NCBI GenBank assembly: GCA_038496445.1
Contig: JALMLS010000275.1
Location: 27,159-91,158, forward strand
DNA: 64,000 bases
Origin: Trichosphaerium sp. ATCC 40318
Lineage: Eukaryota > Protista > Tubulinea
Direction of reading: 5' to 3'
Part shown: positions 12,142 to 46,508 of the stretch, piece after piece
Layout of the letters: every line of letters begins with the position of its first letter
Position numbering within the stretch: the first letter of the stretch is position 1
The notes under the pieces: model-generated
The model's database searches: none
The model's input: the letters and a program-made list of their open reading frames with translations, nothing else
Told to the model about the DNA's origin: nothing
Program-made: the position numbers and the translations under genes

Positions 12142-12599
12142 TGAGATTTGGCATAGATAGACGTAATAAACTCCAGGATCCTCGCAAATACCAAGCCAGA
12201 GTCATGTCTGGTTTGTATTTTTCTCTCAAAACGCGCTGTATCAGCGCCGGTTGGTTCGTATTCTGGAGATCGGCAAGCATGAGTGTACAGGCGTGACGTT
12301 CCTTAGATTTGATCATAAAAAAAACTGCTGTAGTGCGAAAGGGAACAGAACAGATTGCTCTTTTATATTTGTTTACCATTACCTTTTTTTTATAAATAAA
12401 CGCAAAAACTACACAATCATGGTACTTTTCTCATATTATGCCTTGTCCAAAATGATTTTTGTGCCATAAACCTAGTTCAAATTCCAAAAGTGAACATCGG
12501 GTATCCCCATGAGCAACTAAATGAAGTGGGTGCGGCAAAGGCTCAGACTGCCGAATTTAAACAAAAACTTACGAAATAACAACATAAATGGTTTATTAG

Positions 12600-15430
12600 T
12601 TACAACTCACTAGCCATAGAGTCTAGTTTTCTACCCCTTTCCATAACAAATTGGTACATAAAAAATACCGCAAACATCATCACCACGATAACGATAGTCT
12701 CAACTCCTATTTTAATACCGCTTGTATACTCCCTGGCTCTCCTTAATAAATTCTTTGTTCCTTCCTATTGTACTGTGAGAATGAGAAAATATCTAAGAGA
12801 AAATGTGTGCCTTAAATTTCCTTATGGATGTTCTATCATCAGCGAGTCTTGTAACTACAACGTAATTTGGTTAGTAGTTACTTTTTTAAGCTCTGATATG
12901 TTTTTTTACTTGCCTCCTCCTACTCCGCATAGTTGAATTTTTTCCAAACATCTGGCAATAGCTTCAACTGTTCTAAAAGTACACAGTCATCTCTCAGAAT
13001 GAAAATAAAAAAAAAAAAGCAGCTCTCGACTTACAGCTTGTATTTGGTACTATCCCTATCAAACACTTCTCGTTTTGTGTAGTTGGAAACATACACTACT
13101 TCGTCGAATTCTACAAAGGGATTAAATAAATTAAACAAGCGTTTACTTACTGTCTTCTGCTTCGTCCCACTTTACTTTGTCAAGATTCGCATCTTGAATA
13201 GGAGCTTGCCCAGGGGCAGTGATTTCATCGTTTGCTTTGTCAATATGAGTGATGAGTACAATATATGGGATTCCTAGCAAATTTAAGTAAATACAAATAC
13301 AACACTGGCATACCTCTTTTCTTCAAGTCCGTTGCATAAGACTGAAGTGAACCTAGTGCGTTGCTATCTTTGTATTTTCCAACCAAGATCGCTAATTGGA
13401 TTTTATCTTTTTCTTGCTTTCCTCTAGCTCTCATATAATCCTTATCGTCCTGAGTTGGCAACGCTTCGATATCTGTGCACGTGGTCAGCTTTTTTTGGTT
13501 TGGATTTCAACGCGGCTACACGCACATTTTTCAATTTCTTCCCCGATCTTCTTCTCCTCAAGTGCATTGATAGACATTCCGCTTTTGATCGTTTCTTCCA
13601 GTAATGTCACGTGCTCCCCAATGTCTTGACCTGATGGAATGCCAGGAGTAGTCCTACGGAGGTATAAGAAGCAACCATTGAGGTTTAAGCACACCAAAAT
13701 TTCAAGAAGATGTTGTTGTGTAGCCGTAATCCAACTCGACTTGTAGTTCCAGTTATCGCCACTGTACTCTCACTATCGAAGGTTGCAGTTCGGTCTAAGC
13801 CTGAAGCAATAGATAGTATATTATTAAAGAAACATGTCTTGCCAGAACTTGGAGGACCGGCAACAGCGATGTTACAAGTAGAGCCCCAAGAAGGTGTAAA
13901 TTCAGCGATAGCTATTTCCAGCTCTTTAACAGATGGGTTTATTGCTAGTAGAGCAGCACGATTTATGTTCGCCTTTTGAATGATGTTCGGCTCGTTCCTA
14001 AAAGAGTTTGTTAGGCGCATACAAAGTGTGGATATTTCAGTTCCTTTAGGAACATTAACGTACACTGCCATACTATGTTGCGGGGTGTTGTACTGCCTGT
14101 TACAGGACTGTTTAAGAGGTAAACTGTATCCAAGCAGTGATGCAAGTTTTCGAGGTGTTATGCCATCCTTGTTGGTTGCTTGCATTAATGCCCCTACCAA
14201 GTAAAAGTGAACTTGTAACGATGAGATATCAAAAGTTTGTACCTTTGTCAATCAAAAATTTGAGTACATTTGTATTTTGTACTGCTACTGCCCAGAACAA
14301 AGGTGTGTCACCTCGTTCGTTTTTAGATTCGAGACATGCTCCTTTAGAAAGAAGATCTTCAGCATTTTCAACTGTACCATGTGCTGCTACGAAATGAAGT
14401 GCAGTATCTCCGTCTAGTTCTGTTAGTGACAAATGCTTGATGCAACGTACATCTATTACTACCACTTGAACCAAGTTTAGAGAGTGTGTATATGTAATCA
14501 AAACCATCAGGAAGGGTAGCCTCAGTCTGGTCTGCTGAGTCGCATAACAGGTAGCCACTTGAGTCATATCTTGATTGGTCTGAAGGGGGACCTGCCTTAT
14601 TCTCATCAGGGGTTTTAACACAATGGCCTGCAATCATTTGTTCGTGTGTAACATATTGAACTGCAACATGGTTTTTCGACCATCCATTAGCTTAAATAGA
14701 ACATTAGTAACATGTACGTAGAGTATTTGACATACCCGATAATACTCTTGTGCACAGTCTACAGGTTATACTTTGTATTGCCATGTTTACTTGTTCAATG
14801 CATAACGAGGAATGGTCAGGCATATAGGACTTGTGCACACATGTTCCTTGCTCCGTATAAAAGTAAATTGTAGATGGTGGCCAAAAATTAATTCCTCCAA
14901 CTGTTCCTAGAGCAAGTGTAAGGACATTCCAAAACTCTTCATTTCTAACCCCGCATTCCACAGTTAAGTAAAATAACATTAGGTGCGATACTTGTTATTG
15001 TAGGTTTGCCAAAGCCTATGACGTTATCAAAAGAAGTGTCACAAAGTGTTTCCAAACCAACCCATCCACATATAAGCCGTTACTTTAACAATGAATTCAA
15101 TAAGGAGTTCGCTCGATTGCTGCTTTAGTAGATTGTAAGAAACACATGTGATCATATAGGCACCATACCGAAAAAACACCAAACCGTAGGCATGCATCGA
15201 ACTTAAATGGGTGTCCATCCAATCTAACATTAATTCCTATCCAAACGATCATTTATTGTATTGTTAATACCAGTAAGTTGTACCTAATTGAACTCCATCA
15301 AAGCTGGCAACACCAGAAATATCAAAATTTCTTCGAATGTAATCTAAAAAATACATAGTTTTTTAGTACTAAGGATACTGGTATAATGATTGAGTCCATT
15401 CAGAGTAGGTAGAACTGCTGAAGAGCACAT
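12600..15430 (-). pseudogene. Copy A: N-terminal domain + ankyrin repeats + IFI44-like P-loop GTPase + C-terminal TM anchor; 2-bp frameshift near 15045
   Basis: GDTALHFVAAHG/GDTPLFWAV; NIAVAGPPSSGKTCFFN; FWTTPG; KDKIQLAILV; GIPYIVLITHIDK; VSNYTK; TM VETIVIVVMMFAVFFMYQFV; aaacacttt vs aaacacacttt in copy B. Confidence 0.75.
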
Positions 15431-15519
15431 GGTGGTACTAGAAAATGGAATGGCCCGTAACTTTAGACAGACGTTTTAGAATCTTTCGTTTCGCCTATCC
15501 AAGCGCATATTTATACCCG

Positions 15520-15972
15520 CAACATAATTTCAGCTTCAAAAAAAAACCAAATAAAAACACGTGATCCAAACGTCACGCAAAAAAAAAATGGATCTTGGTA
15601 GAATGTTTTTCGTTTACTAAAAGCTAATTACGTAGTTTTAGGCACGAAAATGCTTGCCTACCTCTTGGTTCGTCGTTTTCTCTAAGCTTCAATTGTTTAA
15701 AAGGTGATAGCCCTAGTTCCGGTTCAATAGTACACTGTACGTAGTATTTTGGTGCATCTTCTTTCACAGTCTACAAAGCAGTTAGTTTTAATACTATTGA
15801 GAGTCTTTACCAAACAAACGCATGGTTCTGGTGTTAAATACTTGTTCGAACGTTCATCGCCAAAGAAATGTACTGTAGTTTCAATATCCCCACAATCCAT
15901 TGTAGCGAAAGGTGAATCGCACGCTACAGACGGTAGAAGTGGAAATAGGCCTTCAAGTTGATTTGTCTCCAT
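15520..15972 (-). pseudogene. Upstream small spliced ORF (METNQLEGLFPLL..), duplicate of 20260-20770 with an internal deletion
   Basis: Near-identical to the 20462-20770 ORF but missing ~20 codons. Confidence 0.45.
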
Positions 15973-16117
15973 CTGGCGTATTTGTTCGAGTTAATAGTTT
16001 ATTTTTGATTGACCAAAACAAAACCATGTCGTTAAATTAACTGAATTTGTTCGAGACTAGCGCTAGTTAAGTCTTTTTGTGCTTATAATTTCGTACCATT
16101 ATCCTAATGAGTGTGCT

Positions 16118-19100
16118 CGTATACTCCCTGGCTCTCTTTAATAAATTCTTTGTTCCTTCCTATTGTACTGTGAGAATGAGAAAATGATATCTAAGAGAAA
16201 ATGTGTGCCTTAAATTTCCTTATGGATGTTCTATCATCAGCGAGTCTTGTAGTAGTTACTTTTTTAAGCTCTGATATGTTTTTTTACTTGCCTCCTCCTA
16301 CTCCGCATAGTTGAATTTTTTCCAAACATCTGGCAATAGCTTCAACCGTTCTAAAAATACACAGTCATCTCTCAGAATGAAAATAAAAAAAAAAAAGCAG
16401 CTCTCGACTTACAGCTTGTATTTGGTACTATCCCTATCAAACACTTCTCGTTTTGTGTAGTTGGAAACATACACTACTTCGTCGAATTCTACAAAGGGAT
16501 TAAATAAATTAAACAAGCGTTTACTTACTGTCTTCTGCTTCGTCCCACTTTACTTTGTCAAGATTCGCATCTTGAATAGGAGCTTGCCCAGGGGCAGTGA
16601 TTTCATCGTTTGCTTTGTCAATATGAGTGATGAGTACAATATATGGGATTCCTAGCGAATTTCAGAACCTTTGATGGGTAACCGTAATCCAAACTCTACT
16701 TGTAGTTCCAGTTAAAGCCACTGTACTCTCACTATCGAAGGTTGCAGTTCGGTCTAAGCCTGGAGCAATATATATTATACCATTAAAGAAACATGTCTTG
16801 CCAGAACTCGGAGGACCGACAATAGCGATGTTACAAGTAGATCCTGCTATAAAGATCTGGACAAACTTGAATAAAACGTGGAATACTCACTGCGACAAAC
16901 TGGAATCCAGTATGGATGAGATGATCTCTAATGTATCTAAGTTTAGAGTACAATTAAAATAGCATTAGAGCTATAGACCAATATGTCCTAGCGAAGGCAG
17001 CCTCAATCTTCAGTAGCAATCCCACACAAACTGTAAAGAAAATGGAAAAAATAATCCGAAAACATACACGTAAACTATGCAAATCCATCAATGAGCAAAA
17101 AGACGCAGACTATATGGCGGTTACAAGGAAGTTGTGAAAAATGTGATATGTGATATGCATTGAAGACAAGCAAATAGATATGGCAACACAATACTAACTG
17201 TGACAATTCAGCAATGGTTGCTGTTAAAAATGACAGACTACGGAACGCCCAAACATTTAACTCACAAGTAATATCCAAAATGGGCGATATCAAACTTCCT
17301 CCACCAGGAAACAGAGATGGACACTATCAAATACACGATAATTTTTTGGACACGTGGGGAGAAATAAACAGCAAAATATAATATACACTCCTAATGGCTG
17401 TACACGTGTTTTACTCCGTTACAGACATTTGGGTAAACTTCAGTTGACTTCGTATAAATCAACGACAACAACCGACAAAGCTTAAACAACATGGCGAGCA
17501 GCAATCACCCACACCCCACCCAAAAATTTCCTTTTCAATTTGTTTTAAAAAACTGTAAAAACCTTTCTTTATTTTCCAAGTGTTCTTGTATAATATAACA
17601 AATGCTTGGCACTGTAATAGAGCCACAAGACATTTTGGTTGGATGCATTCATATCTGTACCTTCGTATCTGGATGGTTTGGTCGATTCAGTTATCCAGCT
17701 GTCATCCCATGCCTTTTAATTTTCTTCTTTCCTTGATTTTTGGTAGTTGCCGTGTACAGCTATTCTGTTCTTACTATGAATTTATTGTCCCATTCCCAGT
17801 CATTCGTAGTGAGGTGTTATGATGTATTTGTTTTTGTCTACCTAATTTTGCTAGGTTATCTGCTTCTCTATTTCCTGTTTCTTTCTTTTGCATACGATAT
17901 TTATACAAAAATACAAGATGGGAACGTATGAAACTAGCAGATGTGAAATATGCGGAGATGAAGATGAAGAACAAGCAGAAGACATAAATTAATTACTCCG
18001 ACCTTACAAACCTTCCTAAACTCCACATCTGAAGTCATAGGACAGGTAAGTAAATATCAAAAAAGCACCAATGGCAACTTAGAAGGGATACAAGAGGTCA
18101 TACCAATAACAGGACACCTAGAAACAAATGTTGTCAAGAGTAAACTAAAGGAAAAACAAACAGAACAAAATACGCCACCTATGAACGTATATTCAATCAC
18201 ACGAATATGTTCATGAGATATAGAAACCCAAATAGAAGTATATCACCAGAATTATGGCTCTTGGCCATTCTGGGATTCAACAAAAGAGACTACACTAACA
18301 GGAATCACATGCAAAGACAGCATGAAATACCCGACATTCTACAACGAAATGTTATACGTATCGAGAATGATATCCTGGGCTCACAGTTCCAATCATGCTT
18401 TGGATATATTGCATTCCAAACGGCCACACGCCTATCGACAGAATATCACAAGGAATTAGCGATAAATCTACTATCAAGAGCTTAGAAAAACAGTATTAGA
18501 GATGGCACAACAGAAGACTTGAGGAATACAGATGAAGATTAGTTTACTAACAAAAACTTTTAGGGGCAATTCCAGGTTCTATGGAGAGCTTGTGTTGTAC
18601 TATATAATGTAACGTAATATGCGCCTTGAGTAAGCTTTGCGAAATCAAAATAAACCATACAAGTAGATCCCAAGGAGGAGCAAATTCAGCGATAGCTATT
18701 TCCAGCTGTTTAACAGATGGGTTTATTGCTAGTAGAGCATGATTTATGTTCGCCTTCGGCTCATTCCTAAAAGAGTTTATTAGGCACATACAAAGTATAG
18801 ATATTTCAGTTGTAGGAACATAACGTACGCTGCCATACAGTAATACCCAAGAGGTAAACTGTATCCAAGCAGTGATGCAAGTTTTCGAGGTGTTATACCA
18901 TCCTTGTTGGTTGCTTGCGTTAATGCCCCTACCAAGTAAAAGTGAACTTGTAACGCGATGAGATATCAAAAGTTTGTGTACCTTTGTCAATCAAAAATTT
19001 GAGTACATTTGTATTTTGTACTGCTACTGCCCAGAACAAAGGTGTGTCACCTCGTTCGTTTTTAGATTCGAGACATGCTCCTTTAGAAAGAAGATCTTCA

Positions 19101-20175
19101 GCATTTTCAACTGTACCATGTGCTGCTACGAAATGAAGTGCGGTATCTCCGGCTAGTTATGTTAGTGACAAATGCTTGACGCAACGTACATCTATTACTA
19201 CCACTTGAACCAAGTTTAGAGAGTGTGTATATGTAATCAAAACCATCAGGAAGGGTAGACTCAGTCTGGTCTGCTGAGTCGCATAACCGGTAGTCGCTTG
19301 AGTCATATCTTGATTGGTCTGAAGGGGGACCTGCCTTATTCTCATCAGGGGTTTTAACACAATGGCCTGCAATCATTTGTCCTAATGTAACATATTGAAC
19401 TGCAACATGGTTTTTCGACCATCCATTAGCTTAAATAGAACATTAGTAACATGTACGTAGAGTATTTGACATACCCGATAATACTCTTGCGTACAGTGTA
19501 CAGGTTATACTTTGTATTGCCATGTTTACTTGTTCAATGCATTTCGAGGAATGGTAAGGTATATGGGACTCGTGCACACATATTCCTTGCTCCGTATAAA
19601 AGTAAATTGTAGATGGTGGCCAAAAATTAATTCCTCCAACTGTTCCTAGAGCAAGTGTAAGAACATTCCAAAACTCTTCATTTCTAACCCCGCATTCCAC
19701 AGTTAAGTAAAATAACATTAGGTGCGATACTTGTTATTGTAGGTTTGTCAATGTCATCTATGCTGTTATCAAAAGAAGTGTCACAAAGTGTGTTTCTAAA
19801 CCAACCCATCCGCATATAAGCCGTTACTTTAACAATGAATTCAATAAGGAGTTCGCTCGATTGCTGCTTTAGTAGATTGTAAGAAACACATGTAATCATA
19901 TAGGCACCATACCGAAAAAACACCAAACCGTAGGCGTGCATCGAACTTAAATGGGTGTCCATCCAATCTAACATTAATTCCTATCCAAACGATCATTTAT
20001 TGTATTGTTAATACCAGTAAGTTGTACCTAATTGAACTCCATCAAACGTGGCAACACCGTATGGATCAAAATTTCTTCGAATGTAATCTAAAAAATACAT
20101 AGTTTTTTTAGTACTACGGACACTGGTTTAACGATTGAGTCCATTCAGAGTAGGTAGAACTGCTGAAGAGCACAT
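16118..20175 (-). pseudogene. Copy B of the ankyrin/IFI44-like GTPase gene, disrupted by a retrotransposon insertion and deletions
   Basis: 5' exons open (18870-20175); P-loop fragment NIAIVGPPSSGKTCFFNG at ~16780-16845; 3' exons 16118-16660 near-identical to copy A. Confidence 0.8.
16845..18657 (+). mobile_element. 5'-truncated, degenerate non-LTR retrotransposon with an internally inverted RNase H segment
   Basis: 13-bp TSD TACAAGTAGATCC at 16832-16844 and 18658-18670; empty site in copy A (~13872); RT-thumb-like peptide on +; GNREADNLAKLG on - (17840-17875); zf-like SRCEICGDEDEE on +. Confidence 0.8.
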
Positions 20176-20259
20176 GGTGGTACTAGAAAATGGAATGGCC
20201 CGTAACTTTAGACGGACGATTTAGATCTTTCGTTTCGCCTATCCAAGCGCATATTTATA

Positions 20260-20770
20260 CCCGCAACATAATTTCAGCTTCAAAAAAAACCAAATAAAAA
20301 CACGTGATCCAAACGTCACGCAAAAAAAATGGATCTTGGTAGAATGTTTTTCGTTTACTAAAAGCTAATTACGTAGTTTAAGGCCCTTAAACGCTTGCCT
20401 ACCTCTTGGTTCGTCGTTTTCTCTAAGCTTCAATTGTTTAAAAGGTGATAGCCCTTCCGGTTCAATAATACACTCTACGAAGTATTGTGGTGCATCTTCT
20501 TTCACAGTCTACAAAGCAGTTAGTTTTAATACTATTGAGAGTCTTTACCAAACGAACGCGTGGTTCTGGTGTTAAATACTTGTTCGAACGTTCATCGCCA
20601 AAGAAATGTACTCTAGTTTCAATATCCCCACAATCCATTTTAGCGACAGGTTTTTTAATATCGTCTATCTCTGGCTGGTGTGTGTTCGCTGTGTCATCGC
20701 TTGTAGCAAAATATGAATCGCACGCTACAGACGGTAGAAGTGGAAATAGGCCTTCAAGTTGATTCTCCAT
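20260..20770 (-). CDS. Small spliced hypothetical protein or gene fragment (MENQLEGLFPLLPS..)
   Basis: ORF continues after GT-AG introns (..EPRVRL|TVKEDAPQYFVECIIEP..); duplicated at 15.5-16.0 kb. Confidence 0.4.
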
Positions 20771-20964
20771 CTGGCGTATTTGTTCGAGTTAATAGTTTAT
20801 TTTTGATTGACCAAAACAAAACCATGTCGTTAAATTAACTGAATTTGTTCGAGACTAGCGCTAGTTAAGTCTTTTTGTGCTTATAATTTCGTACCATTAT
20901 CGTCGGGTCTACATACGTAAAGATAAATAATCAATATACTACCGCTAATAAGCATTTAGAGCAA

Positions 20965-23093
20965 TGGAATTGATTCAAAAAACGCTAGACGGTTCGTTTA
21001 CTGTTTCCTTTTTATGTTTCCCCCGTTTCTCACAAATTAAAAAGAAGGAGAAACGTTGCTTCACGCAGCGGTAAATGAAAAAAACCACGACGCTGTCATA
21101 TTACTGTTAAACAACGGGTGTGATGTAAATGCGAAAACTAAAAAAAGAGGCATAACTCCACTGCACCTAGCCGCGGTGAAAGGTGAAGCTCGTATCTTTG
21201 ACACTCTCCTAAAAGCAGGTACTGCTCATTGTTTAGCTCAATCATATTCTTTCCTCACTTTTTTTTTACTATTGTAGGAGCTGATGTCAATGCAACTACA
21301 ACTGATGGTTTGACACCAGCCAGAGCAGCCCGAATTTTTGGTGAAGTGAAAGAGCAACACAAAGGATCTATGCGCAAAGAAAACGCATACAATGTACAAA
21401 CCACAAGTTCATACAGTTCAAGAACAAGTGCTCATTTGACACTTGAATCACCTCCAGAAAAGATACAAGAAGAAAAGTCACGTGAATTTAAACCTATCCC
21501 AGAAACCGTTTTCTCTTCTTCACCGAAAATTTGTGGCAACAAACCAATATCATCTCAAGGGAAATATCACGATAGGAGTTTTAAATGCATACTCGCGATA
21601 ATGTTGGCACAAGGTCGAAACATGAGTGTAAGTTTCCTTCTCGCTTTTCTTCTTTTTTGCTTTCCTTGACTCCAATTGTGAATTTGTTACTCACTCTCAT
21701 AAGATCCCGGAACCTGTATATCATGCAAACCCATTTGCAAACCGTGAACCAATTAGAGTGATTCTTCCTGGTAATGACATAACAAAATATGAATGTGAGG
21801 TTACACATCAGAATAAAAAAGAGTTAACACGAACATTCAAATGTGGCGATCCAAACCTAAAATATAATAAGAAAAAAGGGAGACATCCAGTATTGGAGAA
21901 ACGACAATCATCTACAAAAACGCCAGACGGAAATTTACAATACAACTTGGTATTGGTACTTGCTCACAGTGGGTGGTACACCGCGACCATCAGCCACATT
22001 GACTCCAAAGAAATTTATAAGATAACCATCCGCGCTTACTCTCGCAATTCCAATTACAAAGGCCTCAAAGATAAAATAAAATACTACACATCTGAAAAGC
22101 AAGTAACCGAACAAGAAAAGAACCTCAGAAGTCGTGGAAACCAAAATACAAAGCAGTATGTTATCAGCTTAAGCTACAGTTCGCTAATGTAAAGTAAGGC
22201 CTACAAACAATCCTCAAACAAGACAAGACACAGAAAAGCCTGTTACATTATTGCAAATACGAAATTCGGATGAAATCCTGATGGAGAAAATGTCCAAAAA
22301 GCGAAAAAATACACACAAGCACGTCATTTCAATTTTAGCTACAACTGCTAATATTAATTTTAGGCCTACAAACAATTCTCAAAAAAGACAAAGAACAGGA
22401 AAGCCTATGACATTGCACAACAGTAATTCAGTTGAAATCCTGCGGGAGAAAATGTCGAATCTGCTTGTTGGCAAAAAGCATACTTCAACATTCTATATCA
22501 ACTTGCTTGGTAAACCCGTACTCACAAAAGAACAACTCGATAATGGATGTACACCTACAACTATCTGGGGCACCGAACCTGATCCGAGAAAAGTTACAAT
22601 TACCACTCATGCCATCAATACTCCTTCTGAAAAAGAACTTAACGAGCTTCTCATGGAAGCCTCTCGTCTCATTTATGGCTCCAAAGAAATTATCATACAA
22701 AATCTACACAATAAAAGCGCTGGTTTGGAGATCACCAGAAACTCCTATATCATCACAGTGCGAGATTCTGACAGCATCCCTTTATCTTCAAAAGAGAGCT
22801 GTTTTTTTATTCATGGTCTACTTTGGTCAGCTGTGGCTCGCCTCCCTATAGTTCAAGAGGTTCGCTTTTCAGGTATTCCAGTACCTATTATTGAAAGTGA
22901 CTTTTCAGCTTTTGTGGCTCAGCAGTTCAATGCCACTGTTATTGATGGAAAACGAGTACTTTTAAACAATTTCCCAACTAAAGACATTATCATTTCTCTT
23001 GGTGAAGCATGTGATAAGCTCATGGAAGGGACATTCTCTTTACACCTCCAGCGCGAAGAATTACATATCATATACAAAACCATTAAGAGTTAA
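20965..23093 (+). CDS. Ankyrin-repeat protein with an unknown central beta-rich domain and C-terminal domain
   Basis: MELIQKTLDG|ETLLHAAVNEKN..GITPLHLAAVKG..|ADVNATTTDGLTP; exons continue to TAA at 23093. Confidence 0.75.
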
Positions 23094-24084
23094 GCTAGGG
23101 TTTTCATAATCCACTAAAACTGTTTTGTTCTCCGTATTCCATTGTAAAATAAACTTAACATTTGCATTTTGACTTCGCTAATTTAAACAACCCAAGAACA
23201 TCTTCATTATGTGTTTTCACAGTAGGTAATAAAGGTCTTCGCCTAGAATTTGGTAAAAAACATCAAGATAAAAATGCGAGCGAAAGGTGGCACTTAGCCT
23301 AGTCCAACACTACCAGATTGGAGGAGACTCCGTCTCGCTCGGTTGCGACCCTATTTGGATCAACGTAGCCAGAAACCCTTCCCATTTATTGGATTGATCT
23401 CTTGTACAAATCAATAAATTACATTAAACAAACTTTTTCTATCGTAATCTGGCATTGAGCACGTTTATTATCCTCAAGATGCAAACCATCCAGATAATAC
23501 AAGGCTTGATACAAATGTCGGTACATGAGTTTTAGTGGTCTGTTCAGCTATACCAACTTGAAGATAACAATCAGCAGTGAAAAGGTTTACACAGATTGTT
23601 GTGGTTACTATTGGCTCAGGATGCGTAGTTTTAAAATTTTAAGAGCTAACAGCTAAAACGAACCAGAAAACGCATAGCAAAAGACTTCTATTGGTAAAGT
23701 AGTATCAGGAGAGAATTTCGTTAAGCAGTTCTACTACTGGTTTAACGATTGAGTCCACTCAGAGTAGGTATAACTGATGAAGAGCACATGGGCTATGAAC
23801 GTGGAAATTGAGAATCAGATATGCCTCGAAAATGTTGATTTTATCTCAGCAATAAAAACTCTGTCCTGTCAACTGTGAACGTGTCTTTCAACTTCTTTAC
23901 TACGGACCCAGTCATGTTTTTATCACCTTAATAATATCAAGTACGTACTAGCCCATCCACACGATGGAGGGAAATACTTATCGTTTTACCATTGATAGAA
24001 AGGTAGGTATGTTGTGCCTATCCTTGAGTTTGGAATAACTACTGCTTCCGGAGGACGATAACTGAGCAGTGATTTATATATTTT

Positions 24085-26020
24085 CTGGCGGGTTCATAGG
24101 AAAAAAAACTCCCGGTTCATAAGAATTTCAACTTTTTTCAACGCAACCATACACACAGCAGTCAACTTTTAATTGTTTGTTTCTTTTTACAGGTATGGGA
24201 ATCATGCTCAATATTGTATACAAACAGCAAAATCTCATATTGAAGCATTTGATAGGCCGGGACATGACGAAATTCACAGCGTCCACATTTTTCTGTTTTT
24301 TTTAGCAGTGTCCATGAATTGATCACGCACCACCTGAGATAATACAAAATAACGTGATATGGTTGCTGTATAGGCAAGTGACATAGAGTGTTCAATACAA
24401 GACCCCATTGAGAATATCAATGTCATTAAAATGAGTGACATACATTTCCCTACGAACTGAAATTTGAGAGTTTAGTAGTAATGCATACACTTGTAGTCAT
24501 TGTAAGACTCTAAAATGTCTACAAGATTAGTGCTAGGGCAATAAAATAGATGTGGCTTCAGTTATGGATCTTTGGAGTTGTCACATAATACACACGCAAA
24601 ATTCAAGCAACCGGGCAGACACTTAAATATGTACCCTTTGTGTTGAATCCAACGTTGCGCCTATTGATTGGTCGTTTTTTGAAACTTTCGCTACTAAAAT
24701 CGTTAGTATGATAAACAAAGTGTTGTAGAAGATCCTTTATGAATTGTAACGCGTGATAAGTTGTGTACAAGCTTGTTAAACCAGAAAATGTTGTAATGTA
24801 CACTAAACGACACGCCATGACACGCCATGACAAACTACGTACTGTTTTTAAACCATGTGATTGATTCTTATGAATGGGGTAGTCTTTTTCTGTTTTTTTA
24901 CTAGATGGGAGTTGACACTTTTATATTTGTGATTCTAATAATTCAGTCTCGGGCATATGGTCAAATCCCAGTCTTGAAAATATGCGCGTACTTTTGTAAA
25001 GTCGATTATTCTGCGCTCTAGCTGTACTGGTTTTACTCAGCCAAATTTTGTGCGTGTGTTTGTGGTATCAAATAATTTTTTGCTACACACAGTACTGAGA
25101 AATCGCGAAAAAACATACACGCCAGTAACAGCTGGTGCTCTTGTGTGGCTTGAAAATTAACACGAACTTGTTCGGGCTGTATGGCATCGTAAAAAATGTG
25201 GACCTGCATGTGGGAGGAGAAAAGCTGTATTTACCTGTTCCATCATTGTTTTTTTTTATTATGTGGTTGCATTGTATTACATCTTGTGGTAATTTATTTC
25301 ACCAGTAGGGATTGTAAAAATCAACTACAGTAGTGAAAATTGCACTAATTTTCAATTTTAAAAAAGTTTTTCACTAAATTTGGTAATAAATTGCGAAAGT
25401 CGTGCACCAAAGTACTTTATTGAATTTCATATAGCTATAAACGATGAAAATTAAATACATACAATACACTGGGCGCTTTTTACAAAAATGTAACGGTTTA
25501 ACAGCAAATAAGAGGTGTACTTCTACTATTTGGATTTCTAGGCGCGTATAAAGCAACAATAACCACTTCTTGGGAGTGTTAGTTGTATAGAAAATCAGAA
25601 AAAGCTGTTTTTCTTATACAGGCGCCACAGCGCCTATAATATTGTACCAACGCTTCTCACAATTATAAGATTGTGCTTTATGGTGTTTTTTTGCAGATCA
25701 AGGGTGTGCTGTGCATGAAAACAGAGTTTGTGAACAAACAACACTCATGCTCCCCATAGATACTTTAAACCACATAGTGCATGTAATGCGCCATTAAACA
25801 GGACGAGTGTACTTTTTTTTCTCTTGTGCCAAAACCAAAAATAACCAAAATACTTGCGATGTATTTACACACGTAAAACACCATGTTAAAACACATTAAC
25901 GGCCATTATTATTAAGTCACAACTTGCTTATCAAGAGCGACTTGTGCCATACACTATGAATGGGGAGTTCAAAAAGTTAAGTCTTATGAATGGGGATATT
26001 AAGTCGTAAGATCTCGGCAG
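24085..26020 (-). mobile_element. Degenerate piggyBac-like DNA transposon relic
   Basis: Minus-strand fragments FIKDLLQHFVYHTNDF, QWGLVLNTLCH, LYYLRWCVINSWTLLK in piggyBac motif order; imperfect inverted TTCATAAG/CTTATGAA end repeats. Confidence 0.5.
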
Positions 26021-26092
26021 ATTTTAGTATAAACTTGGTACAGTATTGCGAAATAACAGCATAAATGGTTTATTTAGCGAAAAATTCTCTAG

Positions 26093-28045
26093 TTACAACT
26101 CACTAGCCATAGAGTCTAGTTTTCTACCCCTTTGCATAACAAATTGGTACATAAAAAATACCGCAAACATCATCACCACGATAACGATAGTCTCAACTCC
26201 TATTTTAATACCGCTTGTATACTCCCTGGCTCTCCTTAATAAATTCTTTGTTCCTTCCTATTGTACTGTGAGAATGAGAAAATGATATCTAAGAGAAAAT
26301 GTGTGCCTTAAATTTCCTTATGGATGTTCTATCATCAGCGAGTCTTGTAACTACAACGTAATTTGGTTAGTAGTTACTTTTTTGGCTCTGATATCTTTTT
26401 TTACTTGCCTCCTCCTACTCCACATAGTTGAATTTTTTCCAAACATCTGGCAATAGCTTCAACCGTTCTAAAAATACACAGTCATCTCTCAGAATGAAAA
26501 TAAAAAAAAAAAGCAGCTCTCAACTTACAGCTTGTATTTGGTACTATCCCTATCAAACACTTCTCGTTTTGTGTAGTTGGAAACATACACTACTTCGTCG
26601 AATTCTACAAAGGGATTAAATAAATTAAACAAGTGTTTACTTACTGTCTTCTGCTTCGTCCCACTTTACTTTGTCAAGATTCGCATCTTGAATAGGAGCT
26701 TGCCCAGGGGCAGTGATTTCATCGTTTGCTTTGTCAATATGAGTGATGAGTACAATGTATGGGATTCCTAGCGAATTTAAATAAATACAAATACAACACT
26801 GGCATACCTCTTTTCTTCAAGTCCGTTGCATAAGACTGAAGTGAATCTAGTGACTTGCTATCTTTGTATTTTCCAACCAAGATCGCTAATTGGATTTTAT
26901 CTTTTTCTTGCTTTCCTCTAGCTCTCATATAATTCTTAGCGTCCTGAGTTGGCAACGCTTCGATATCTGTGCACGTGGTCAGCTTTTTTTGGTTTGGATT
27001 TCAACGCACATTTTTCAATTTCTTCCCCGATCTTCTTCTCCTCAAGTGCATTGATAGACATTCCGCTTTTGATCGTTTCTTCCAGTAATGTCACGTGCTC
27101 CCCAATGTCTTGACCTGATGGAATGCCAGGAGTAGTCCTACGGAGGTGTAAGAAGCAACCTTTGAGGTTTAAGCACACCAAACTTTCAAGAAGATGTTGT
27201 TGGGTAACCGCAATCCAACCCGAATTGTAGTTCCAGTTATCGCCAGTGTACTCTCATTATCGAACTTTGCGGTTCGGTCTAAGCCTGAAGCAATAGCGAC
27301 CCAACCATTAAAGAAACATGTCTTGCCAGTAGCCTCCTTACCGAAAATAGCGATGTTACAATCAGACGGCCAATAAGGGAAAAATTCGCTGATAGCTATA
27401 CACAGCTGTTTAACAGATGGGTTTTTTGCTGTTAGAGCTTTAAGGGTTATGTTCGCCTTTTGAATCATGTTCGGCTCGTTCCTGAAAGAGTTTGTTAGGC
27501 GCATACAAAGTATGGATATTTCAGTTCCTTTAGGAACATTAGCGTACGCTGCCATACTGTGTCGCGAGGTGTTGCGCTGACTGTTATAGTACTGTCGAGA
27601 GGTGTTCCTGTTGTTAACAAAGTGTTTTGTTTGTGAACTGACCGTTTTTTAAAACGTGATGACTCATCACAGGAACAGGAACTCTTGAACAAAAACCAAT
27701 CACGTATTTTCAAAAAACAATGGAGAAAGAAAAAGTAGCAGTATTTGTTCGAGACATCCCTAGCCATGTGGAACACGCTGAAAGTTTTTTCAACCAGAAA
27801 GAATATCAAAAGTTCGAATATGTGTTTGTAAAGTTAACGAACGCTGGTATCAATGACCCCAATAATTCTGTACGTTCCACGTAGGTCTAGAACAAAAACC
27901 CTTCAACTAATTCTAACTGCAGTTTGTATACCATGACGCTATTCGCAGAGGATGCGATGCAAGCGACAAGCACATGATATTGTATGTCGACCACGATGGG
28001 AGTGGTCGCATTGGTACAGATAACAATGCGCGCGATGGGTCTCAT
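26093..28045 (-). CDS. Copy C: IFI44-like GTPase + TM anchor with a different, non-ankyrin 5' region; 5' structure uncertain, possibly a pseudogene
   Basis: NIAIFGKEATGKTCFFN..WTTPG..LITHIDK..TM; 3' exons near-identical to copy A; homology to A ends at ~27600. Confidence 0.7.
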
Positions 28046-28864: not shown

Positions 28865-29103
28865 GTATGCCTTGAAAAAGTTGATTTTATCTTAGCAATA
28901 AAAACTCTGTCCTGTCAAATATGAACGTCTTTCACTTCTTTACTAAGGCGCCAGTCAGATATTTTTATCCCTAGTACCCTGTCAAGTACTACGCCAATCC
29001 TCAAACGGTGGAGTGAGAATACATGGCACAATGTGACACCTTCCTAAGCCACGTGTCTAATGTGATCCAATTTTTACTTAACCATTTGACTCATAATACG
29101 CTC

Positions 29104-34819: not shown

Positions 34820-35834
34820 TTATGCGTCAAATTGTATTCCAGAGTCTCGAAGGTAGAACCTTCCTTCCCTAGTGATGTTCTCACAATACCTTAGATCCAT
34901 TACTTTAAGACCAGCGTCAACCATAACTTTCAACATTTTATCAGTAACTCCAGTGCAAGCGACACTTATTATCTCTACTCCAGCAAGCGCCATCACACCT
35001 TCATCAGTTATTGAAGGCTGTGCATTATTCGTCAAATCTACGTTCTTTGCGCCTGCTAAGGCTTTCAATCCTTCATCGCTTATTCTAGGGCAATTTGGTA
35101 TGCTTATCTTGTATACACCTTTTAAAGCCTTTAATGCTTCATCAGTTATGTTCAAGAAGCCCAATAGAATAGTATGGATTCCTGCATGGGCTTTGACGCC
35201 TTCATCTGTAATTTGGTGGCATCTACGAATATCCAAGCTTTCACAACCGGCAAGAGGTATTATGCCCTTGTCAGTGATTTGTTTACAGTAGTATAAGCAT
35301 ACGTTGCGAGCTCCTGCTAAAGCAGCAACTCCAGTGTCTGTTACGTTTGGGCAGCCACTAAGATCGATGTTTTGTACGCCAGATAGTGCTTTTAAACCTG
35401 AATCGCCAACATACGTGCCAGTAAGATTAATGGCACTTATACCAGCCAAAGCTGAGATACCAACGTCTGTGATCTGCCTACATCCTGATAAACTCATAGT
35501 GTGGGCGCCAGCAAGACTTTTAAGACCGTAGTCGCGTAGTTCTGTGCGGCATTGATTATCTGCTTCCAAAATGAGCCGCTTAGCTCCTGCGAGTAGCTTT
35601 ATGTTCTCGTTGGTAGTACGGGGATCGACTCTATGGAATTGTTAATTTCCTTTATTGTTGAATAGTGTTTCAATCTAAAAGTACCAATCGCTCTACGTAC
35701 CTTATAGTGATGATTTGTAGTAACTTTTTGCGCTTAAGTAATTCGTGGATTGTTTTATTGTTTACAACCCCAGAAGGGCCACATGTGCATACAGTAGCGG
35801 AACAACCTTTGCAAGCGGGGGTGTTTTGAGCCAT
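34820..35834 (-). CDS. Cys-containing leucine-rich repeat protein (AMN1/FBXL-type repeats)
   Basis: Repeats of LxGxxxIxLxxCxxITDxG; short first exon MAQNTPACKGC.. Confidence 0.85.
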
Positions 35835-42032: not shown

Positions 42033-43688
42033 CTAAGCTTTATTTACACTACTTTCTACGACACTGCCCATTTCTACATTCGATTTATTTGATGTGTTCC
42101 CACTCATCTTACTTGAAGTCTTTCTATGTACTCTAGAAGGTAAGAAACTAAGTACTTGTATTACTGAAAGTGCATTAAAGTTAATGACTGCCATAGACCA
42201 ATATGCAAGCTTTGAAAGAGGTTCTGTTCGTACAGCAGGAAATATAATAAAACTCGCTGCTTGTACAACAAGTCCCACCATTATGATTAAGCTAGATATT
42301 ACACGTATCAAAAGTCTTGTTATCATCCCATTAGAACCGGATTTTGACTGTCTAAGACGTTTCCATAGCTTGTATGAGATGATAATTAAATAAATAATGA
42401 TAGAAACATTAGCAGAGGTATGAAATACAGCCGTAGCATAGAGCGTGTATGCGAGATCATACTTTGGAAAGAGAGCTATGCGTACAACTGATAAAAGTGT
42501 TTCAGAGAATACTAGCATACTAGCCAGTACATAGAAAGGTATTGCCATTCTTTGAAGGTAAGGCGTTACTTCTAGGCTGAGAGAAGTCATTGATTCATGC
42601 CAATAAAGAACAATCAACAAATTCGATATATTGGAGAACAAAGTGTAGTACACCTTGAAGACTTCATCATACCTAGATACATGATATTAGCGTTTTGAAG
42701 AGAAACCTATAGTCAACATACCATCCAGGAAGGAAAAATAAGTATCCATGAGGATCTGGAATACACCATGCTAAGCGGAAAATGTTTGCTACAATTTCTA
42801 TTGCAATCCCAACTTTAGGAATTGTGATTTTAAGTCCGTCAATTAGTACGAATTGCATCATCCTAATACGACAAATCAGTGTATAATAGCATTCATGTAA
42901 CAAGAACACACCTTACAATTGCAACAGAAAACGATGCTCCTGATATTAGTACCAAAAACACGTGGATAGCTGATAATAATAATTTGTTAAGACTGGTGCG
43001 ATATTGCAAGAAAGAAGAGAACATACCTATTACCCATGGGCTCATAAAAACGTTGTACCACTCATTCTCACAGTGATTGAAAGTAATTTTCGTCCCTGGT
43101 TTTATAGACTCTACATAACGCTGTCCAAAAATAGGAACTCCGAGATTTTGCAATGCGTCTACACGTGTTTTAATAACGAAAAAAAAAATACGAAATACAG
43201 CCGACCAAAAGCTCTTACCTCCGTTCAGCTTAATAAAGTTGCCTTTGCCAACTCCTAGGTCGCTTATTGAATCAAAATACTCGACAATAGCAACTACGCC
43301 TTGAGATACCCATTTTCTGTACAGTTTTCGGTCTTCAGGGTATCTACCCAGAACAGCGTTCCCTAGTATTTGAATTGAACAGACAGTTTTTTGACACCTT
43401 CTTTGTTTCAGAAGGTTCAGTTGAAAAGTACCTGAAATGTTACTGCTGGTATGTGGCGACACAATCGTGGCGTTAAACGTTGATATTTTAATTTTAGAAT
43501 TTCTGCCGAAGAAATAAGGGATGGCTGCATACTCCGTAGAAGTACCTACATGAACAATTAGTTTTCATGGTTTAACGATAATGTAATTTCTGAAAAAGTT
43601 GTTTTAAACTCTCGCCGTTATGATGTAAAGTAATTTCAGCTGTGGCTATGCATATCAGGGCCAAGATGAGGTGTACTATTGTTAACAT
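42033..43688 (-). CDS. Signal peptide + extracellular domain + 7TM (GPCR-like/THH1-TOM1-like) protein, copy 1
   Basis: MLTIVHLILALICIATA; multiple TM helices; WCIPDPHG; Ser-rich tail. Confidence 0.8.
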
Positions 43689-44898: not shown

Positions 44899-46508
44899 TT
44901 ATTTGATGCTTGCGATGCTCCCACTCATCTTACTTGAAGTCCGTCTATGTGCTCTAGAAGGCAAGAAACTAAGTACTTGTATTACTGAAAGTGCATTAAA
45001 GTTAATGACTGCCATAGACCAATATGCAAGCTTTGAAAGAGGCTCTGTTCGTACAGCAGGAAATATAATAAAACTCGCCGCTTGTGCAACAAGTCCTACC
45101 ATAATTATCAAGCTAGATATTACACGTATCAAAAGTCTTGTTATCATCCCATTAGAGCCGGACTTTGATTGTCTAAGGCGTTTACATAGCCTGTACGAGA
45201 TGATAATTAAATAAACAATGATAGAAACATTAGCAGAGGTGTGAAATACAGCCGTAGCATAGATCGTGTATGCGAGGTCATACTTTGGAAAGAGAGCTAT
45301 GCGTACAACTGATAAAAGTGTTTCGGAGAATACTAGCATACTCGCTAGTACATAGAAAGGTATTGCCATTCTTTGAAGGTAAGGCGTTACTTCTAGGCTG
45401 AGAGAAGTCATTGATTCATGCCAATAAAGAACAATCAACAAATTCGATATATTGGAGAACAAAGTGTAGTACACCTTGAAGACTTCATCATACCTAGATT
45501 GATGATATTAGTATCCTGAAGGGAAACCTATAGCCCACATACCATCCAGGAAGGAAAAATAAGTATCCATGAGGATCCGGAATACACCATGCCAAGCGAA
45601 AAATGTTTGCTACAATTTCTATTGCAATCCCAACTTTAGGAATTGTGATTTTAAGTCCGTCAATAAGTACAAATTGCGTCATCCTAATACAACAAATCAG
45701 TGCGTAACAGTAGTCATCTAACAAGGGGTATACCTTACAATTGCAACAGAAAACGATGCTCCTGATATTAGTACCAAAAACACGTGGATAGCTGATAATA
45801 ATAATTTGTTAAGACTGGTGCGATATTGCAAGAAAGAAGAGAACATACCTATTACCCATGGGCTCATAAAAACGTTATACCACTCATTCTCACAGTGATT
45901 GAAAGTAATTTTCGTCCCTGGTTTTATAGACTCTACATGACGTTGTCCAAAAATAGGAACTCCGAGATTTTCCAATGCGTCTACACGTGATTAACAACGA
46001 AAAAAATAAAATACGAAATAAAGCTCTTACCTCCATTCAGCTTAATAAAGTTGCCTTTGCCAACTCCCAAGTCGCTTATTGAATCAAAATACTCGACAAT
46101 AGCAACAACGCCTTGAGATACCCATTTTCTGTACAGTTTTCGGTCTTCAGGGTATCTACCCAGAACAGCGTTCCCTAGTATTTGAATTGAACAGGCAGTT
46201 TTTTTGGCAGTTTTGACTTTCTTTTTTCAGAAGTTTCAGTTGAAAAGTACCTGAAATGTTACTGCTGGTATGTGGCGACACAATCGTGGCGTTAAACGTT
46301 GATATTTTAATTTTAGAATTTCTGCCGAAGAAATAAGGGATGGCTGCATACTCTGTAGAAGTACCTACATGAACAATTAGCTTACATAATTTATACGATA
46401 ATGAAATTTCTGTAAAAGTTGTTTTAAACTCTCGCCGTTATGATGTAAAGTAATTTCTGCTGTGGCTATGCATATCAGGGCCAAGATGAGGTGTACTATT
46501 GTTAACAT
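44899..46508 (-). CDS. 7TM protein copy 2 (tandem paralog) with a frameshifted, shortened C-tail
   Basis: Near-identical to 42033-43688; net +7 nt near 44905-44920. Confidence 0.8.

Follow-up and report, generated by a model that had tools for sequence, protein, structure and literature searches.

The window analysed here, a stretch of 64,000 nucleotides (nt) from the marine amoebozoan Trichosphaerium sp. ATCC 40318, carries on its minus strand a family of genes that probably encode membrane-anchored P-loop GTPases, in one intact case joined to ankyrin repeats. The window is eukaryotic in composition (GC 36-40%, introns of about 40-70 nt), in keeping with the published draft genome of Trichosphaerium, which has 37.7% GC and a mean intron length of 75 bp (PMC10521059). 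Comparison of the window with itself using blastn revealed three copies of the family, all on the minus strand, bearing out a claim of gene duplication made in a first-pass annotation of positions 12600-28045. Copy 1 corresponds to a self-comparison unit of 12597-16103. The three copies are:

12600-15972, minus strand: copy 1, an intact long gene; 17-exon model of 769 amino acids (aa), frame open throughout.
16115-20901, minus strand: copy 2, a tandem head-to-tail duplicate of 12720-16103 (blastn map).
26093-27555, minus strand: copy 3, an intact short paralogue (9 exons, 354 codons); open spliced coding sequence (CDS) colinear with P0001.

Three sequences from the MMETSP0405 transcriptome of this organism (taxid 498012), P0001, P0002 and P0005, all of them baseline transcripts, were analysed together with the genomic copies. 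P0001, a transcript-derived paralogue of 354 aa, served as an independent template for exon structure. It differs from P0005 at 6 positions, and with these two the genome has, away from this locus, no fewer than two additional expressed paralogues or alleles. P0002, on the other hand, matches the exons of copy 2 at 100% and reads on into an insertion within that copy.

Copy 1 was spliced on the minus strand from 12600 to 14419 by GT-AG rules, and the result was corrected against P0001, which added a 66-nt in-frame intron within an apparent single exon, the small exon TRLADDRTSIRKFK, two GC-AG introns and the exact C-terminus. Exons 10-17 are colinear with P0001; read from an internal Met, copy 1 contains an uninterrupted CDS of 354 codons that is colinear with this expressed protein. 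In P0002 a single reading frame links the ankyrin exons to the beginning of the G-domain region, and the ankyrin-to-GTPase junction of copy 1 is supported, by analogy, by this transcript of the equivalent copy 2 exons. Exons 1-5, together with exon 6 upstream of the P0002 start, were modelled from open frames and GT-AG sites alone. The resulting protein comprises an N-terminal region of about 320 aa with no domain assigned, about three ankyrin repeats, a linker, a P-loop GTPase, a helical stalk and a tail anchor. All of the motifs quoted in the first-pass annotation were recovered from spliced copy 1, and in the order given there (ankyrin, GPPSSGKTCFFN, WTTPG, KDKIQLAILV, GIPYIVLITHID, VSNYT and a C-terminal hydrophobic segment). 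The parts of copy 1 that matter for the argument are:

14243-14413 and 14064-14193, with a 49-nt intron between them, minus strand: ankyrin exons (Pfam).
13695-13997, minus strand: P-loop exon, with the helix before strand beta1, G1 (GPPSSGKT), switch I (TGTT.RVG), beta2/beta3 and a variable patch.
13526-13653, minus strand: WTTPG exon, G3-like with Thr for the usual Asp, followed by the switch II helix; the small_GTP alignment reaches this motif.
13314-13472, minus strand: KDKIQLAILV exon, strand beta4 and the subsequent helix, a secondary-structure order taken from a low-confidence model.
13151-13273, minus strand: GIPYIVLITHID exon, G4 motif in the THxD form.
13035-13110, minus strand: VVYVSNYT exon, G5 position.
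12600-12764, minus strand: last exon, with a basic stretch, a transmembrane segment, a 13-residue tail and the stop codon, together the tail anchor.

The two ends of the long form were examined separately. Over 14244-14417, copy 1 matched Pfam Ank with 41.3 bits (E=1.3e-10) and Ank_2 with 36.4 bits (E=7.8e-9), both above the gathering score, and the third repeat runs on into the next exon. P0002 has a Pfam ankyrin match too, whereas copy 3 and P0001 lack ankyrin repeats. At the C-terminus, a hydrophobic segment occupies residues 732-756 of 769, with a Kyte-Doolittle peak of 2.37 at 738-756; no other 19-residue window exceeds 1.6, and the segment ends 13 residues from the C-terminus, inside the limit of about 40 residues used to define a tail anchor.

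Two features of the introns were also recorded. Two consecutive GC-AG introns occur in copy 1 (12855-12913 and 12765-12810) and in copy 3 (26351-26408 and 26258-26306); they begin GCAAGT and GCACAC, and their exon junctions are fixed by P0001. The 66-nt intron (13998-14063 in copy 1, 27482-27547 in copy 3) is in frame and stop-free, and is 95% identical between the copies versus 81% for the exon that follows it. Both known transcripts have it removed; its retention would lengthen the protein by 22 residues, and it may be an alternative coding segment.

Copy 2 is a transcribed pseudogene, with P0002 as its transcript. It has lost 413 bp, the equivalent of 13285-13697 in copy 1, and with this deletion the exons for WTTPG (G3) and KDKIQ (beta4) are gone; the last exon is truncated by the duplication boundary, and the product of copy 2 therefore ends without a membrane segment. 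The P-loop exon is in addition split by an insertion:

16845-18657, no strand assigned: 1.8-kb insertion with a perfect 13-bp direct repeat on either side, interrupting the P-loop exon of copy 2.

The repeat (TACAAGTAGATCC, at 16832-16844 and 18658-18670) is a target-site duplication, its target being present once in copy 1 (TACAAGTAGAGCC). No terminal inverted or long terminal repeats were detected in the insert, which has no second copy within the window, and it may be a non-LTR (non-long-terminal-repeat) or otherwise unclassified mobile element. The first exon also differs in length, encoding 74 aa in copy 2 (20549-20770) and 54 aa in copy 1 (15811-15972), a difference of about 20 extra in-frame codons.

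Copy 3 consists of the GTPase and tail anchor without ankyrin repeats, the same short form as P0001. It is 93% identical to copy 1 across 26090-27595, where the homology ends, and its ATG is preceded by an upstream in-frame stop. A minus-strand open reading frame (ORF) at 27887-28045 was considered as a further part of copy 3 and rejected, since it is not homologous to copy 1 and a stop lies in frame upstream of the copy 3 ATG. The description of 12600-28045 as a tandem family of ankyrin, GTPase and tail-anchor genes accordingly holds in full for copy 1 but not for the degenerate copy 2 or the ankyrin-less copy 3, and the interval is not all family: 20.96-23.1 kb is occupied by another ankyrin gene on the plus strand, and nothing at 27.6-28.05 kb is homologous to copy 1. 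Likewise, of the proposal that the family is expanding by duplication, the duplication stands, but one copy in three is dead and another one in three carries ankyrin repeats in an intact gene. Intact expressed members do exist, with an open CDS in copies 1 and 3 and with P0001 and P0005 as MMETSP transcripts.

Relatives outside this genome are few. A full HMMER search with the 165-aa P-loop exon against 1.84 billion representative proteins returned 4 matches: two Trichosphaerium transcripts, a 102-aa fragment from an assembly in ENA, and one mollusc protein matching in the ankyrin repeats only. The ENA contig (ERZ25072490, ctg171434; hereafter L001) is eukaryotic, 13.4 kb long, with 45% GC and 2.15x coverage, and positions 1-1530, at the contig end, hold a homologue about 40% identical that shares intron positions with the Trichosphaerium genes. 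Its motifs are GRPNVGKS, STPG, KSKIHMALLI, VVTHIDK and ANY, followed by a hydrophobic C-terminal stretch; its frame is inconsistent at two places, one close to the G5 exon and the other at the final exon junction, which may reflect either assembly errors or decay. The homologue adjoins a gene for a TCP-1/Cpn60 chaperonin. Word-indexed searches with P0001 or its G domain found no further relative, and in a word-indexed search with a four-row profile (A2) thousands of bacterial Der/EngA P-loops, at 30-35 bits, swamped any candidates. Contig scans of JGI metagenomes and IMG/VR yielded no relative, and exact look-ups of the window ORFs and P0001 in assemblies gave no match. With so few relatives from the HMMER, word-indexed, metagenome and viral searches, the family must be either very narrow or very fast-evolving, and from these sequences it seems confined to Trichosphaerium and a close relative. 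A viral origin was also considered and has no support, since the IMG/VR scan gave no relative and the genes are intron-rich.

To what kind of GTPase do these proteins belong? Pfam MMR_HSR1 was the only curated family to reach its threshold with P0001 (23.2 bits against a cut-off of 21.9), so that the best profile match was a generic one and not another GTPase class, leaving in place at this level the kinship with IFI44 that the first-pass annotation had proposed. The NCBIfam model TIGR00231 (small_GTP) aligned over G1-G3 with E=7e-5, below its threshold, and both it and MMR_HSR1 align onto the P-loop exon. The remaining NCBIfam matches were sub-threshold and generic (Era, EF-G and two non-GTPase P-loop families), and the PADLOC library gave no match. 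In the PDB, EngA/Der was matched with E=2.5e-5, essentially over the P-loop alone, and BLASTP against a Der GTPase aligned G1 through G4, with LITHIDKAND on VVNKVDKAND and hence THID on NKVD. EngA/Der, Era and EngB gave the only statistically supported matches of the family; the G1 to G4 alignment is consistent and the likeness is essentially that of the P-loop. Unlike the family, however, these proteins are soluble, act in ribosome assembly and carry KH or tandem G domains, with neither an anchor nor ankyrin repeats.

The individual G motifs point in the same general direction. G1 (GxxxxGK[ST]), after a hydrophobic strand, is present in copy 1, copy 3, P0001 and L001, and G4, the motif ([NT]KxD) that confers guanine specificity, takes the form THID, with its conserved Asp kept in L001 as well. 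The DxxG of G3 was not found; at the position of G3 in the small_GTP model the Trichosphaerium proteins have TTPG and L001 has STPG. The residue after the G3 Gly is hydrophobic, where Ras has its catalytic Gln. Such a residue is a mark of GTPases that lack the Ras-type Gln and are activated by G-domain pairing, among them the Era/EngA, septin, Toc, GIMAP, IRG and dynamin groups. Conservation as far as the 40%-identical homologue covers the G1 Gly and Lys-Thr/Ser, the switch-I TGTT, the G4 Asp and the Ser/Ala-Asn of G5. AlphaFold2 models were of low confidence (predicted local distance difference test, pLDDT, 39 with a shallow alignment and 34 for the G domain alone); in them, only the predicted order of strands and helices is compatible with a Ras-like fold.

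Judged from sequence, then, these genes probably form a small, lineage-restricted family of tail-anchored P-loop GTPases of the TRAFAC class, generic MMR_HSR1 in type, with one long form that carries ankyrin repeats. Several observations weigh against this assignment. Without a confident three-dimensional model, the GTPase fold rests on motifs and weak profile matches, and the significant database matches span little beyond the P-loop. When the P-loop was removed from the P0001 query, only weak PDB matches were left, to designed ankyrin proteins over residues 110-135 and none of them individually significant; with no single stretch reaching significance, we put these down to the switch II helix resembling ankyrin by chance. 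In every member the G3 Asp has given way to Thr or Ser, and the interior of the P-loop varies among paralogues, changes that could mean weakened or lost nucleotide handling. As for the long form, its 5' exons have no transcript support, and its N-terminal half shows no coding constraint when copies 1 and 2 are compared. Targeted literature searching found no description of this architecture, in agreement with the first-pass annotation, and the family is best filed as what appears, as far as we know, to be an undescribed architecture built on an already known kind of GTPase, the tail-anchored TRAFAC type.

The P-loop exon also differs from the remainder of the gene in how it has diverged. Copies 1 and 3 are 97-100% identical in 8 of the 9 short-form exons and about 95% identical in most introns, but only 81% identical in the P-loop exon (short-form exon 2). 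The divergence peaks at 26 differences in 75 nt (13837-13911 versus 27321-27395), centred on the P-loop codons. Over codons 4-104 of this exon the nonsynonymous rate (dN) was 0.225 and the synonymous rate (dS) 0.188, a ratio (omega) of 1.2; omega was 1.6-1.8 in the first two thirds and 0.44 in the last third, which contains switch I. Outside the P-loop exon dN was 0.010 and dS 0.019 (omega 0.53). These counts are small, and nothing is claimed from them beyond the obvious non-uniformity. Conservation was lowest over residues 30-67 in each pairing with P0001, and the inner four P-loop residues differ in every copy (PPSS, KEAT and PPGF, with RPNV in L001). The patch runs from the strand preceding the P-loop, through the four variable residues of the loop, into the first part of helix 1. 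The pattern could reflect diversifying selection acting on the surface that surrounds the nucleotide pocket, or patchy gene conversion that has homogenized all but this exon; patchy conversion is favoured by the fact that dS, too, is raised in the P-loop exon.

The same variability raises the possibility of a pseudo-GTPase, in which the protein would serve as a membrane-anchored scaffold, its P-loop fold kept without nucleotide cycling and the functional work left to the ankyrin repeats. Replacement of the G3 Asp in all members would fit this, as would a dN/dS of about 1.2-1.8 over the P-loop part and inner P-loop residues that differ in every copy, which is unusual for an active site. However, the remaining G1, switch-I, G4 and G5 residues are kept as far as the 40%-identical homologue, and the short form, with no ankyrin repeats to do such work, is intact and expressed; we consider a pseudo-GTPase very unlikely.

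The combination of G domain, helical segment and C-terminal transmembrane anchor suggests a different placement, with the Toc34, AIG1 (GIMAP) and septin-like group, in which case the role would lie in organelle or endomembrane homeostasis and not in pathogen sensing. Toc34 and several GIMAPs have, as textbook cases, a tail anchor after the G domain and a helical stalk; Toc34/Toc33 and GIMAP/AIG1 genes are clustered and duplicated like those of the family, and the position of their catalytic Gln is hydrophobic, implying activation by G-domain pairing. The TH.D form of G4 and the hydrophobic residue after G3 also fit this group. With the P-loop exon of L001, Toc34/Toc33 structures in the PDB were matched at E=0.03-0.09 over G1 to beta3. 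In the PDB comparison that gave EngA/Der, septin CDC10 appeared at E of about 0.7-1. Neither was significant, however, and EngA/Der ranked above Toc34. Pfam AIG1 (PF04548) and Septin (PF00735) failed to match P0001 at E<=1, no AIG1 conserved box was recognized, and we know of no ankyrin fusion in the Toc34 or GIMAP families. Another amoebozoan, Entamoeba, has expanded AIG1 families (PMC12930195). Taken together, membership of this group is unlikely.

The first-pass annotation had gone further and read the G domain as a true homologue of animal IFI44/IFI44L, within a membrane-anchored innate-immunity sensor that diversifies against giant viruses or intracellular bacteria. IFI44 has FFN after GK[ST], a KD.I strand, THxD and SNY, with the G3 Asp present. 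The corresponding motifs are present in copy 1, and FFN after the lysine, THxD and SNY are, as local resemblances in the sequence, real leads. Strings of this sort also occur in IRG, Toc34 and GIMAP proteins, however, and the order G1, G3, beta4, G4, G5 is common to every TRAFAC GTPase; motif order is for that reason uninformative on IFI44. Similarity to IRG, Toc34 and EngA is comparably weak. No IFI44-named protein appeared among the matches from the HMMER or word-indexed searches, whose limits (word sharing, length windows, a single-exon query) could have hidden one. Oyster IFI44L is described as TLDc plus MMR_HSR1 (PMC11682996), so that it and P0001 are both labelled by the generic MMR_HSR1 model alone as far as the G domain is concerned, and IFI44/IFI44L genes are, like the family, multi-copy in some invertebrates. 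Since this generic label is shared, it is compatible with IFI44 kinship and not specific to it. In place of TLDc, the N-terminal domain by which IFI44 is defined, the family has ankyrin repeats and a C-terminal anchor: no TLD (PF07534) match was detected at E<=1 in model exons 1, 2, 6 and 7, scanned singly with the three shortest exons (12-22 aa) left out, a single-exon procedure of limited sensitivity. The G3 Asp, moreover, is absent from the Trichosphaerium family.

Other observations bear on the immune interpretation by analogy and context. Duplication, a dead copy and a patch in which dN equals or exceeds dS are common in defence genes, and about 1,581 genes in the genome of the host are of giant-virus origin (PMC10521059). 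Set against this, dS is itself raised in the variable exon (0.19 versus 0.02), and selection accounts for the pattern no better than patchy gene conversion. We regard true IFI44 homology as decidedly unlikely.

A looser kinship, in which the family would be a deep-branching relative of IFI44 and/or IRG, acting as a membrane-anchored switch in the amoeba's cell-autonomous defence against giant viruses or intracellular bacteria, with the P-loop patch as a surface of host-pathogen conflict, is very doubtful. The IRG (p47) protein Irga6 has, like the family, a W-x-x-P-G-I context at G3, and its structure in the PDB gave a weak 85-residue alignment to the family, from the helix before G1 through G3, that was not significant (E of about 0.5, or 1.6 with the copy 1 exon); Irgb10 was also not significant (E of about 0.8-1.7). 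Pfam IIGP (PF05049), scanned on P0001, and GBP gave no match at E<=1. In contrast to IRG proteins, the family lacks IRG-type flanking helical domains, and its anchor is a transmembrane segment, where that of IRG is a lipid or an amphipathic helix.

The surroundings of the family are those of ordinary cellular genes. A gene for a poly(A)-binding protein (RRM and MLLE domains) lies just upstream, and other neighbours encode a glycosyl hydrolase, a leucine-rich repeat (LRR) protein and a MORN-repeat protein. An unrelated gene lies inside the interval 12600-28045:

20964-22190, plus strand: ankyrin-repeat gene, Pfam Ank E=1.5e-11 on 21056-21240.

It contains no P-loop, and outside Ank the remainder had no family match; this gene, in the 20.96-23.1 kb stretch, is unrelated to the GTPase family. 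Dispersed short repeats of 57-63 nt and 91-92% identity occur as two pairs (15376-15432 with 23735-23791, and 23820-23882 with 28866-28928); one repeat falls within the long intron 2 of copy 1. Possibly they are pieces of a small repeated element. Further along, 34820-35569 is a minus-strand ORF of 249 aa made of LRR_6-type leucine-rich repeats (Pfam E=8.5e-23), and 42033-42653 and 44899-45474 are near-identical minus-strand ORFs of about 190-206 aa, multi-pass hydrophobic and without a Pfam match, that represent a local tandem duplication.

If the preferred assignment to tail-anchored TRAFAC GTPases is correct, the proteins would be inserted post-translationally into an organelle or endoplasmic reticulum membrane, leaving the G domain in the cytosol, where it would bind GTP. 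Switching would probably depend on nucleotide-dependent pairing of G domains, by analogy with Toc34, GIMAP, septins, IRG and EngA, and not on a classical GTPase-activating protein. In the long form, the ankyrin repeats and the N-terminal region would recruit a partner protein to the membrane; the short form, as in copy 3 and P0001, would act without this module. Because the variable patch coincides with the surface such GTPases use for pairing, copies may differ in pairing or in partner specificity. An immune role is possible, as a guess that draws on analogy, on the variable patch and on the traffic of giant-virus genes in this host (PMC10521059).

For a family of such narrow distribution, the value of these observations is that of a lead and not of a finding. 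If a deep kinship with IFI44 or IRG were true, the origin of that arm of cell-autonomous immunity would predate animals. A G domain related to defence GTPases of the IFI44, IRG or GIMAP type would make this a rare example outside animals and plants, and a host that trafficks in giant-virus genes would be a tractable system for the original role of such GTPases. Even without a link to immunity, 15 kb of this genome would hold a membrane-anchored GTPase that has acquired ankyrin repeats as a module for binding partners, a duplicate being lost through an insertion, and paralogues that stay different at the surface of the nucleotide pocket.

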